Source of the DNA: Blastocystis sp. Blastoise
Taxonomy: Eukaryota; Protista; Bigyra: Opalinata
Direction of reading: 5' to 3'
Assembly (NCBI GenBank): GCA_039096225.1
Contig: JBBPEB010000004.1
Coordinates: 1,298,364 to 1,362,363, forward strand
Length of the DNA: 64,000 nucleotides
Shown here piece by piece: positions 17,196 to 64,000 of the stretch. Both the position numbers and the translations under genes were made by a program. The notes under the pieces are model-generated. The model saw only the letters and a program-made list of their open reading frames with translations. It ran no database searches and had not been told where the DNA came from. Numbering within the stretch: the stretch's first letter is position 1; every line of letters begins with the position of its first letter.

Positions 17196-17213
17196 TAGGG
17201 GTTAGGGTTAGGG
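17196..17213 (+). repeat. Short interstitial telomeric tract preceding unit 1
   Basis: TAGGGG-TTAGGG-TTAGGG followed by the same unit-start sequence seen at 40636. Confidence 0.9.
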
Positions 17214-17315
17214 AAAAAAAAATATAATTAGAGAATAAGTTAATTTATGTTATAAAAATATAATATATTATAAATATAATTGGATAAAAAAAGATATTAT
17301 TGATTTAATTGGTAG

Positions 17316-17813
17316 TCTAGAATCGTAGAATCGTAGAGTCTACGATTGTATGATTGTAGGATTAAATAAACCAATAGAATAAGTTTAAAAAAAAATCAAC
17401 CAAAATAGTATTAGGGTAAAAAAGTGAACCAAAATAGTATTAGGGTAAAAGAATGATAGAATAAAGTGGTAATGTTTTAAAAGAAGGGTTCTCAAAATTT
17501 TATTAGGGTGAAAATAATTAATTTAATTGGTTAAAAAAATAAAATAAAATAATTGGGTATTGTAGAATTGAAAAAAGAAGAAAATAATTGGATAAAAAAA
17601 GATTTATCCAATAAAAATAGAGTTTTTCATTTCTACAATCATAGAATCGTAGAGTCTACGATTCTACGATTGTAGAATATAAGATAATGAATTTGATTGG
17701 TAGTCTACAATCGTAGAGTCTACGATTCTACGATTGTAGGATTGTAGGATAATGAATTTGATTGGCTGTCTACAATCCTAGAATCGTAGAGTCTACGATT
17801 CTACGATTGTAGG
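17316..17813. repeat. Four palindromic sites, consensus TCTACAATCGTAGAATCGTAGA-G-TCTACGATTCTACGATTGTAGA
   Basis: Sites at 17316-17360, 17632-17676, 17704-17748 (short left arm) and 17769-17813; arms built from tandem TAGAATCG-like 8-mers; nearby ATTGG/CCAAT motifs. Confidence 0.92.
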
Positions 17814-17944
17814 ATGAAATAAGCCAATAGAATGAATTAAAATAAAAAAGTCAACCAAAATGTTATTAGGGTAAAAAAGTGGTTGACCTTTTTGAGAGGC
17901 TTTAATATTTTACTTTACTTTTTTTGTTTATTTTTTAAATTATA

Positions 17945-60000: not shown

Positions 60001-63000
60001 TAATTTAACTTTCATCAAAATTTTATATATCAAAAAATTGTTTATTATATATTTTGCTATGTCTATATAGTCATCCACCTTCTTTCACTTTTTTTCCTTA
60101 AATATTTTCTTATTTTCAAATATTAAACAAACAGAATTTAAACTCATTCTTAAGACATCCAACATTTGTAAATATATATTTCCTTAAAATATTCACAAGA
60201 GTTATTCATTGTTTTAGTTTCATTCAAATCAATATAAAATATTTCAATAATTTGTTTTTATTTTCTAATATTCTCTTATAATCAAGTATCAAGTGTTGTT
60301 TTACAAATTGACTAATAATCATCTTTTGTATTCATAGACTAAACGATATATTATATATTTCTATATCTACTGATAGTGTTTTATTCATGTATGATATTCT
60401 TAAATTATTATATATTTTAATTTTAAGATATATTCATTAAATTTAATTCTTAATCTTTTTTGTTTTGTTTTATTATCAAAGAATAAAGATATTTTATTTT
60501 ATATATAACATTGAAACATTAGGGTTAGGAAGCTAAACAAGTAATTTTTAAATAATAGTTACTAAAGCAAAGACACTTAAACAACACATTTGTTTTATAA
60601 CAAAAAATATAAAGTTATTTATTTTATATACTCACACCTTATTCCAATATACATATTATTATAACATACTAATATACTATAATGAATGATATATTATGTC
60701 AATAGTCTCTGATGAAATATCATCATATTTTCAACATAATGATAAACAACAATGTATATAAACAATATTCTTTTTTTGAAATTTCTTGTAAGTATTAAAG
60801 TTAATTATATGTAGTTATTATAGAATAAAAAGATATATATCAACAAATAAAGTCATTAATATAGTATTAAAAAGGATGTTTTTGATGAAATATTTTTAGT
60901 TTTGAAAATTTTTGGCTTTTTGAAATGACTTTTAATTTTATTTTTGAAATATAAAATAAATTAGTATTAAAAAAGAAATTCTTTTAAGAAAATATTTTTG
61001 TAAATTATTTTTTTTGACTTTAAGCGTCATGAATTGATTTTTTAAATATGTGCTACAATAAATATAATTTTTATAAATTTTATTAATAATGATGATTAAT
61101 AAATTATTAATTAAAAAGCGTTATTTTTTATATACTGATAACCAAATACCTATTTTTCTTATTATTTTTATTATATAGAGAGATATAGATGAGAATTTTA
61201 ATATTCAATAAATATATATATATATATATATATTATTATAGAATAGATTCTTATCATTTTGAAATATTTATGTATATATAAGATATAAAAAATAATTATT
61301 CTTTGTGTCCTATAAATATATTTTTTATTAAAATGTTCTAGTGTTATATATTTCAATAAATATTTATATTAAATTATAATACATAAAATCTATATATGTG
61401 TTAATATAAAATCACAATAGATCCAAATACTATATTTGTATTTATTATATAATGATAATATATATATATATTGTTTTATAAAATATATGTTTTAATTATA
61501 TTATATATATATATTTATTAAATGAATTTATAATTTATATTTGTATTATATGGTTTTTAATTTATATTATATTTATTATAGATTGAATTATTTTATCAAT
61601 ATTTAAGTATTATTGAATGAAAGATAAAAATTATTTTTTAATTATATTATATATATATATATATAAATTCATTTATTTATTTATATAATAAGCTAACTCT
61701 TTTTTTTAAATGATATTTATATTTATTTATAATCTATTTTTATAAATTATTTCTTTATTAGATATTCTATTAATAATATGAAATACGAAATATATATACT
61801 AATAATATATTACTCTTTGAATGAAACTTTTGTATTTATTAAAATTAATTGATTTTTTTTTAATATCTTTAATGCGATATAATTATATAATTATGTGTTA
61901 TTGATAAAAATGTTTTTATTATAATTAAGTGAAGTTAATAAAAAAGACGTATATTTCAATTTTAGAAAATATTAGATAATTTGATTCTATAAATTAGATA
62001 TATAATATATTAATAAAAATAATTTTATTTTTTGAATATATATATTAAAAATAATAAATTCTAAATAAATTTCTGATTATATTTTATATAATAATAGTTA
62101 GTTTACATTTAATATAATGAATTTTATATAACTATCATTATTTAATAATAAATAGTGTTATTTGTTAACGTAAAAAAAAATATATACAAATATTTATTAA
62201 TTAATGAATATTTATTGTATAATAGATATTTTATTTCTTTTAATAAAAATAAATATTAATTTATGAATGATATATTTTAATTATCAAAAGTAGTATTGAG
62301 AATGATTATAAATGAGAGTTTATATTGAATAGTAATTATAAAATTATATTTAAATACTTGAATAATATATAAAGATAAATATTATATATGAATTAATCAA
62401 TTTGTGAAAAATCTGTATTGAATTGTTTAATATTAGGAATACTCATATATAGTTAGTATTATTTTATATATAAATATATAATAGCTAATTATGATAATTA
62501 TATATATATATATATATAAATTCATTATATATGTAAATATATATTTGAATAATAGAAAAAATAGGATAGAAATTATTTAGTTTATTGTATATTTAAATAA
62601 TTATAAATATCCATATAATAAAATATTATTATTTTTTCTAGATATATAAATGAATATAATATATATATTTATATATAGAGAAGTAATAAAATAATAATTA
62701 TTTGACTTTATTTCTGGTTGTATGAAATATAGAATTCATAATGAGTAATAGAATTAGTAATGAATGTTTTATAAATTTTTTTATGCTATGCATTATAATT
62801 ATGTCAATTATTGCTGATATGATAGAATAATAATGAATATAAGTATATATAGGTATATATATAAATATATTATAAAAAGTAATTTAAAAACACAAAAATC
62901 TTTTAGTAACATATAAAACTTTTTGAAAAATTGATTTATTTGATAGTTTGATATGAATAGAAATAAATATTAGAATAAGTCATATGACTATTAATTGATA

Positions 63001-63630
63001 ATATAGAATTTTTAATTAATTTAAATAATTTGTATAATATTGACAATTAATCGCGATTATTTAATATTAATAAGATAATTATTACTTTAAGGTATTTTTA
63101 TAGTCACATTTTAGCTACAGTCACATAATTTTATATATATAAAATTTCTATATCAATAAATGGACACTAAAGACGACCTAAGAGTATATGATGTTATATA
63201 AGTGTTAATAAAAAGTCTATATATATAATAACACTTTTTAGAGATAATTAGTCATTTGATATTATTCGAGTGACATTCTACATATTTTTATGAAAAATCA
63301 TGATTATTATAGAAAGTGATTTATTTTAATAGATAATAACAGATTTATGATTATTTACGACAGATAGAGTATAATTAAATATATTCCCGTGATTATTTAT
63401 AAAAATTGATTATTTTTATAGACAATGATAGATTTATGATTATTTATGACCTATAGAGTGATATTTGATAAATTCCCATGATTATTTTATAAAAGGTATA
63501 GTTTTAAAGACAATGATAGATTTATGATTATTTATGTGTTCGAGAGTGATATTTGATAAATTCCCGTGATTATTTTTAAAATTGAGATATTTTAACAGAA
63601 AATGATAGATTTATGATCATATACGAAAAA

Positions 63631-64000
63631 GGTTAGGTTTAGGGTTAGGGTTTAGGGTTAGGGTTAGGGTTAGGGTTAGGGTTAGGGTTAGGTTTAGGGT
63701 TAGGGTTAGGGTTAGGGTTAGGGTTAGGGTTAGGGTTAGGGTTAGGGTTAGGGTTAGGGTTAGGGTTAGGGTTAGGGTTTAGGGTTAGGGTTTAGGGTTA
63801 GGGTTAGGGTTAGGGTTTAGGGTTAGGGTTAGGGTTAGGGTTAGGGTTAGGTTAGGGTTAGGGTTAGGTTAGGGGTTTAGGTTAGGTTAGGGTTAGGGTT
63901 TAGGGTTAGGTTTAGGGTTAGGGTTAGGGTTAGGGTTAGGGTTAGGGTTAGGGTTAGGGTTAGGGTTAGGGTTAGGGTTAGGGTTAGGGTTAGGGTTAGG
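63631..64000 (+). repeat. Terminal telomere (TTAGGG)n with occasional TTTAGGG/TTAGG variants
   Basis: Continuous G-rich repeats to the window end in the correct orientation for a right-hand chromosome end; variants may be read errors. Confidence 0.98.

Follow-up and report, generated by a model that had tools for sequence, protein, structure and literature searches.

A telomere-bounded tandem 23-kb repeat carrying a single recombinase-like and Ulp1-like gene at a Blastocystis chromosome end

Two near-identical units between telomere tracts

The DNA analyzed here is a 64-kb stretch (denoted the window) of contig JBBPEB010000004.1 from Blastocystis sp. 'Blastoise' (isolate Rus-B, from a Russian tortoise), a stramenopile of the tortoise gut whose assembly comprises 33 contigs, 33.3 Mb and 23% G+C (PMC10690189). 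The G+C content is 13–25% throughout the window, which excludes a vertebrate such as human as the source. At its right-hand side the window runs into a telomere, and inside this telomere lie, head to tail, two copies of a 23-kb unit that are bounded by TTAGGG tracts and that each carry one intact, spliced gene (Table 1). The two internal telomere tracts measure 16 bp and 48 bp, compared with at least 370 bp at the terminus; the chance expectation for the telomere pattern in the window is zero.

The units align end to end with an identity of 99.76–99.91%, differing by 14 substitutions, six of which are located within the first 886 bp, and by 16 indel events. Both begin at the same base, with nine A followed by TATAATTAG, immediately 3′ of TTAGGG. 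They do not share an endpoint on the distal side: unit 2 stops 297 bp short of the end of unit 1, and both ends lie within or beside an array of 89-bp tandem repeats. An initial annotation, made from the letters alone, had described this succession of telomere tracts and units, the common start base and palindromes at the unit start; the tract positions, the alignment of the units and the folding of the palindromes bear out all three.

Each unit contains a cluster of four palindromes at a distance of 100–600 bp from its start, and three of the four are bracketed by ATTGG...CCAAT. Folded as single-stranded DNA, the palindromes gave z values of −6 to −8, and none of 200 shuffled sequences folded equally well. 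The fourth palindrome of unit 2 (41191–41237) differs from its counterpart in unit 1 (17769–17815) by a centre base flipped from G to C and by the loss of the single arm mismatch, so that its arms are perfect at 21 of 21 positions. Interleaved with the palindromes is a motif containing the telomere-like 8-mer ATTAGGGT, which each unit contains six times, exclusively on the + strand. These 8-mers could be binding sites of a telomere-repeat-binding protein, and the palindrome region is a candidate site for protein binding, recombination or a replication origin. Used as a DNA pattern in metagenomes, the palindrome core yielded two chance matches on unrelated contigs of 34–40% GC, which we discarded.

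Outside the gene, the unit is AT-rich and contains many microsatellites. Comparison of the remaining reading frames with Pfam gave zero family matches, and an exact look-up of six open reading frame products in the protein collection returned no match. Since tandem copies carry consecutive locus tags, one gene per unit is annotated. The 'decayed cargo' of the initial annotation is thus not recognisable in the other frames, while its statements that each unit holds one intact spliced gene and that reverse transcriptase, capsid and polymerase genes are absent hold, the latter for the reading frames tested. An Rfam scan of the window revealed no RNA family. On the telomere-ward strand, G exceeds C in most 2-kb bins between 14000 and 64000, with a few bins near zero, and the cumulative GC skew climbs from ~14 kb to the window end.

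Directly on the centromere side of the array we found an older copy of the unit, truncated to distal sequence and lacking the gene (the relic). Positions 15218–17197 match 37591–39517 with 72.8% identity over 2065 bp (blastn, E=0), and 15013–15287 match 35850–36115 at 70% (blastn); relative to the unit, ~1.5 kb are missing internally. A tblastn search did not find a gene relic upstream of the array. The relic ends at unit position 39517 and is directly followed by the first TTAGGG tract and unit 1. The three copies therefore show three right ends in unit positions, namely 39517 in the relic, the equivalent of 40290 in unit 2 and 40587 in unit 1. All three abut TTAGGG-type repeats directly, the join being a short sequence that contains G; this is the pattern expected if an end erodes or breaks and telomere is then newly synthesised. 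We rejected a reading in which the unit consists of two modules split at the internal TTAGGGTTAGG tract, with the relic as a complete distal module, because the two sequences are not colinear over the first ~380 bp and the homology to the relic spans the TTAGGGTTAGG position. Two further telomere-like tracts in telomeric orientation, TTAGGGTTAGGGG (14011–14024) and TTAGGGTTAG (14830–14839), are situated upstream of the relic, where 0.07 occurrences of the 10-mer per window would be expected by chance; the tracts may be remnants of healed ends that are older still. The segment 14023–15012, considered as the start of an older unit, was dismissed, its similarity not exceeding that of shuffled controls.

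The relic also bears on the question of whether the array could be an assembly artefact, in which one unit was falsely duplicated in tandem or two chromosome ends were wrongly joined. The assembly was made from Nanopore R9 reads with Flye --meta and short-read polishing, which, like the near identity of the units, speaks for such an error. Against it, the units have ends offset by 297 bp and 30 sites at which they differ, wrongly joined ends would not be expected to meet head to tail across a telomere tract of only 48 bp, the same type of junction recurs at the unique 73%-identical relic, and arrays of two to three copies are annotated on other contigs. An artefact is the least probable of the explanations we considered. 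Because a 73%-identical relic underlies the young pair, the process that generated the array recurred over a long time.

Table 1. Coordinates of the array, its gene and associated features in the window.
Feature	Position	Strand	Description	Basis
Relic	15013-17198	+	Old copy of distal unit sequence, truncated and diverged, without the gene	blastn
Interstitial telomere tract	17199-17214	+	GGGGTTAGGGTTAGGG, ~2.5 repeats	sequence
Unit 1	17215-40587	+	Internal copy, 23,373 bp	sequence, alignment
Palindrome cluster, unit 1	17308-17828		Four ~43-bp near-perfect palindromes built from 8-bp sub-repeats	
Telomere-like motif	17381-17886	+	Four copies of a ~22-nt motif containing ATTAGGGT, interleaved with the palindromes, telomeric orientation	
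ATTAGGGT sites, unit 1	17410, 17439, 17502, 17865, 33217, 37177	+	Equivalents in unit 2	
Gene copy 1	26565-33676	-	Multi-intron, intact; orphan protein of ~1,800 aa; transcribed towards the centromere	
C-terminal exons	26565-27583	-	Small exons encoding the C-terminal Ulp1-like (clan CE) domain	
Core exons	29616-30943	-	Two exons with the recombinase-like signature	
Second core exon	29616-29990	-	Exon following the large exon; Tyr-x-x-Arg, His, Tyr	
Large exon	30065-30943	-	Candidate Box I Arg and Lys	
Telomere-like tract, unit 1	37178-37188	+	TTAGGGTTAGG, short	
89-bp repeats	39961-40584	+	About seven tandem repeats at the distal end of unit 1	
Interstitial telomere tract	40588-40635	+	(TTAGGG)8, exactly eight repeats, 48 bp, between the units	
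Unit 2	40636-63630	+	Terminal copy, 22,995 bp	sequence, alignment
Palindrome cluster, unit 2	40730-41250			
Gene copy 2	49992-57019	-	Intact	
Telomere-like tract, unit 2	60519-60529	+	TTAGGGTTAGG, short	
Terminal telomere	~63631-64000	+	TTAGGG with occasional variant repeats, at least 370 bp, cut by the window end	

The gene of the unit and its genomic distribution

The annotated model P0001 has 1795 residues, 1750 of which are encoded, in exact 7-mers, by each gene copy of the window; both copies are intact, as the residual residues fall at exon junctions and repeat-length variants. Exons were searched singly, and the spliced product was represented by the annotated gene models, which had been produced with BRAKER3, StringTie and Mikado and whose junctions are supported by RNA sequencing. 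In an exhaustive HMMER search, the large exon proved identical over its length to KAK8802163.1, a 1795-residue hypothetical protein of Blastocystis sp. 'Blastoise'; the second match, P0002, is an unrelated repeat protein and was set aside. The protein consists of long asparagine/serine-rich tracts around two non-repetitive regions, with ~1,000 residues being of low complexity. A helicase domain is found neither in P0001 nor elsewhere in the unit. Shortly upstream of the gene's 5′ end lies an 11-bp tandem repeat of ~17 copies (33835–34047), which is likewise present in unit 2.

The genome encodes 13 models of the protein (P0001 with 1795 residues, P0014 with 1015 residues and eleven more), from as many gene copies, which are spread over at least eight contigs of 0.9–1.7 Mb. 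Among these models, only two of the 293 columns of the large exon vary. The sequence was read directly at one chromosome end, and the other copies were placed by means of locus tags and contig sizes. Tags 003001 and 003002 belong to one contig and 003003 to the next; similarly, 006557 and 006559 fall on successive contigs. Because the tags straddle contig boundaries, several copies must be the first or last genes of their contigs (006557 and 006559 possibly the second). Tags 003309 and 006854/55/58 follow ~300 genes further along the second contig of each pair, consistent with the far ends of these contigs. The runs 003001–003002 and 006854/55/58 represent arrays of two to three copies. The copies thus seem to be restricted to chromosome ends.

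No relative outside this species was detected, either by an exhaustive phmmer search of the large exon against 1.84 billion representatives or by two word-indexed searches of the core; nor were relatives of the core exon found in viral and metagenome contigs. In 50,697 phage genomes, a permissive tblastn search with the catalytic exon produced one match (E=0.9), which was rejected because the matched protein is no recombinase and the catalytic positions are unaligned.

A recombinase-like core and a C-terminal Ulp1-like domain

The central core of the protein contains a set of candidate residues arranged in the manner of a tyrosine recombinase active site. In P0014 numbering, the candidates are R229 in TGCPLRNNDIYNL, K263, Y359-x-x-R362 in YSYRHCFATW, H388/389 and Y397/398, with spacings of 34, 99, 26–27 and 9 residues. 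As comparators we used lambda Int, P4 Int, P1 Cre, P2 Int, 186 Int, Tuc2009 Int, bIL286 Int and N15 protelomerase, with accessions taken from PMC2266997. An unsupervised MAFFT alignment placed R362, H389 and Y398 in the Arg-II, His/Trp-III and Tyr columns of lambda Int, Cre, P2 Int and 186 Int. A profile of the seven integrases scored the core at 4.3 bits, a value that was reached by 22 of 3000 composition-matched shuffles (p ~0.007), and the sole best local match in hhalign was Box II in register (P=0.035). Weak scores of this kind say little either way, because N15 protelomerase, a true member of the superfamily, scores worse in the same small hhalign test (P=0.22). Both the profile and the fold tests are shallow, as the protein family has no outside relatives. 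In our judgement, the core is probably a recombinase-type domain in which a tyrosine replaces the first histidine of Box II.

Several observations speak against this assignment. The exons and P0001 gave no match in Pfam, NCBIfam, PHROGs or the PDB sequences, even at E≤1–10, and so none to the recombinase profiles Phage_integrase, DUF3435 and DUF3504. Y359 occupies a column in which seven of seven comparators have a histidine, the first of Box II, and it is K263 rather than R229 that falls into the Arg-I column of the MAFFT alignment. The N-terminal half of this alignment fails to resolve, the Lys column failing even among the comparators. An AlphaFold2 model of P0014, built from 13 near-identical sequences, had a mean predicted local distance difference test (pLDDT) score of 31 with an unreliable core, and no recombinase was present among its Foldseek matches. 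Of the 'tyrosine recombinase' of the initial annotation, the motifs therefore stand, and the family identity is not confirmed, since every standard homology test fails. The same division applies to its proposal of a large chromosome-end element of the tyrosine recombinase type: the unit is located at the end, is bounded by telomere repeats and has one intact gene with a recombinase-like signature, but the identity of the recombinase is not established, nor does the sequence support the circular or hairpin intermediate that it suggested.

A tyrosine at the first position of Box II is a trait of telomere resolvases; N15 protelomerase itself could not be aligned with the small set of comparators. 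A hairpin-telomere system of the protelomerase type would resolve palindromes into covalently closed ends, and the units would move as linear, hairpin-ended molecules. The strong palindromes near the unit start are what such a system would use. They are, however, positioned 100–600 bp inside the unit, away from the junction, in contrast to the arrangement expected for TelN/TelK-type enzymes; the protein has no similarity to N15 protelomerase (TelN) or to any solved resolvase structure; and all observed ends are ordinary TTAGGG tracts. We regard a hairpin system as highly improbable.

At its C-terminus the protein has an alpha/beta domain, the only usable part of the AlphaFold2 model (pLDDT 60–70). 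All Foldseek matches of this domain were clan-CE Ulp1-like proteases: RavZ was the best (E=8.5e-5), and further matches included OtDUB, the YopJ-family proteins AvrA and HopZ1a, a NEDD8 protease, SseL, NopD and core proteases of large DNA viruses. The domain may be inactive, because the catalytic histidine and cysteine were not confirmed by eye. A combination of the same kind is known from Cryptons: CryptonF-2_PS of Phytophthora sojae, its relatives and some CryptonS elements encode a tyrosine recombinase together with a C48/Ulp1 peptidase (Kojima and Jurka, PMC3212892). Because this pairing occurs in stramenopile Cryptons, the gene is most likely Crypton-derived. The pairing of domains constitutes evidence independent of the motifs, with Cryptons being compared through their published architecture.

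The Ulp1-like fold also enters into a rival explanation, in which the recombinase signature is fortuitous or long dead and a lineage-specific subtelomeric gene, perhaps a relative of Ulp1-like proteases, is carried along passively in ordinary subtelomeric segmental duplications. This would account for the negative profile, sequence and fold searches for a recombinase, for the tyrosine at a conserved histidine position, for the weak statistics (p ~0.007 and 0.035) and for the fact that the C-terminal fold alone is backed by a search tool. On the other hand, four of the six signature positions occur in the expected order and spacing, three of them in register in unsupervised alignments; the recombinase-plus-Ulp1 combination is a known Crypton architecture in stramenopiles; and weak scores carry little information where N15 protelomerase fares worse (P=0.22). 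We therefore consider a fortuitous signature improbable.

Spread of the unit and comparison with known chromosome-end repeats

The unit resembles, above all, the Y′ element of yeast. In Y′ amplification, strand invasion by a short telomere takes place in the telomere tract that bounds a donor element towards the centromere, and the element is then copied through to the chromosome end, so that arrays are amplified from short telomeres (PMC11042809). Like the Blastocystis unit, Y′ adjoins the terminal telomere tract at many ends, occurs singly or in short tandem arrays with short telomere tracts in between, is near-identical across chromosomes, contains one large open reading frame thought to derive from a mobile element, and has a centromere-side telomere tract as the proposed site of strand invasion. 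In kind, the two thus agree in being end-adjacent and tandem, with short telomere tracts and high identity; the helicase of Y′ has no counterpart here. Further differences are that the Blastocystis gene is recombinase-like and Ulp1-like, that the 23-kb unit is mostly non-coding and contains a palindrome cluster, and that in a stramenopile it is an analogue and no relative, its amplification from short telomeres being our inference. The initial annotation had set the array apart from Y′; the type of gene does differ, yet Y′ is the closest anatomical analogue, and the contrast is weaker than claimed.

The fixed left junction, the variable right ends, the short tracts, the high identity between chromosomes and the small arrays favour a Y′-like mode of spread. 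Our leading explanation, held with about even confidence, is accordingly that of a Y′-like subtelomeric repeat which carries a Crypton-derived gene and is copied by recombination from short telomeres. A critically short telomere would pair with the centromere-side TTAGGG tract of a donor unit, which may be located at a different chromosome end or on the sister chromatid, and copying to the end of the donor would add a complete, separately capped unit distal to the previous end. Through repetition of this process, tandem arrays would form and the copies would stay near-identical genome-wide. Within the 89-bp repeats, the chromosome end appears to have been worn back and re-capped at differing points. 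The recombinase might, as a low-confidence guess, exchange, excise or resolve units by acting at the palindromes and in this way aid the persistence of the repeat.

A more active role of the protein is the main rival explanation, though we hold it to be a rather unlikely one. In a telomere-targeting, Crypton-like transposon, the recombinase would join a circular unit closed across TTAGGG into telomere repeats, with TTAGGG as the short crossover repeat, and arrays would arise by successive insertions. Cryptons have flanking direct repeats of 4–6 bp as the presumed substrate of the crossover (PMC3212892); likewise, the 6-bp TTAGGG flanks the unit on both sides, with an exact left boundary. Moreover, the recombinase-like gene is intact in 13 of 13 copies, palindromes are found near the left boundary, and the copies are apparently confined to chromosome ends. 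As Crypton-type termini, the left end is exact and abuts TTAGGG, and the right end is also followed by TTAGGG but differs in all three copies, one of which is internal and hence shielded from later erosion. No inverted binding sites flank the junction, the short internal tracts fit recombination of short telomeres better than insertion into long ones, and the identity of the recombinase is unproven.

The variable distal ends, the short internal tracts and the old underlying copy fit Y′-style copying at least as well as recombinase-driven insertion. Three points temper our preference for the former: part of the 16 indel differences between the units may be leftover Nanopore R9 errors, the positions of the copies beyond the sequenced end derive from locus tags and contig sizes, and the available evidence does not separate homologous copying from recombinase-mediated insertion.

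Other known systems are more distant. Stramenopile Cryptons (CryptonF-2_PS type; CryptonS) belong to the same supergroup, combine a recombinase (recombinase-like here) with a C48/Ulp1 peptidase (Ulp1-like here), lack a reverse transcriptase or other transposition enzyme and have a short flanking direct repeat. They differ from the Blastocystis element, whose protein has no detectable similarity outside the species, has a tyrosine at His-II and contains ~1,000 Asn/Ser-rich residues, and whose unit is apparently confined to ends, has a variable right end and is several times the size of the gene. Telomeric retroelements (HeT-A/TART, SART/TRAS, MoTeR, Athena/Terminons) share the head-to-tail arrays at ends, the junctions with telomere repeats and the fixed orientation, but no reverse transcriptase was found in the Blastocystis unit, and a 3′ poly(A) is absent. 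A retroelement junction of the poly(A) type was rejected because the A-run is located at the unit start on the G-rich strand, that is, at the wrong end and on the wrong strand. Starships are unlike the unit in having a DUF3435 protein, for whose profile we obtained no match, as well as cargo genes and a fungal host. In plasmids of the 2-micron type, the tyrosine recombinase FLP and its inverted-repeat sites serve copy-number maintenance and not transposition. As an idea only, FLP offers a possible model for an enzyme acting at the palindromes; the Blastocystis element, by contrast, is chromosomal and linear, and no plasmid form was seen.

In the centromere-ward part of the window we noted a gene for tRNA-Ile (anticodon AAT; 3419–3489, + strand), the only RNA gene found in the window, and two stretches (5005–5432 and 8186–9382) of tandem arrays with 85–177-bp units and a conserved ~29-bp core in TA-rich microsatellite. 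A 488-bp direct repeat (1.8 copies, 78% identical) occupies 6470–7358. Overlapping + strand open reading frames at 1356–2633 lie in CT-rich low-complexity repeats with strong negative GC skew and are probably non-coding.

Subtelomeric tandem repeats and Crypton-type genes are kinds that are already known. What is new is their combination: a stramenopile repeat specific to chromosome ends whose one gene is recombinase-like and Ulp1-like. A literature search found no description of a recombinase-type element in the niche of a chromosome-end repeat, and the Rus-B genome paper contains neither 'telomer' nor 'recombinase' (PMC10690189). Known end repeats with mobile-element genes are those of yeast (Y′, with a helicase) and of insects, fungi and rotifers (retroelements). 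Taken together, these data document the structure of a Blastocystis subtelomere and add an orphan protein family that is present in 13 near-identical copies per genome. Were the protein a functional recombinase, it would raise the question of whether a site-specific DNA recombinase is able to maintain chromosome ends or to reshuffle them. Should the rather unlikely telomere-targeting explanation be true, the unit would be the first telomere-specific DNA transposon, a Crypton-like element that uses the telomere repeat as its crossover site and that colonises, and helps to build, the chromosome ends of a protist.

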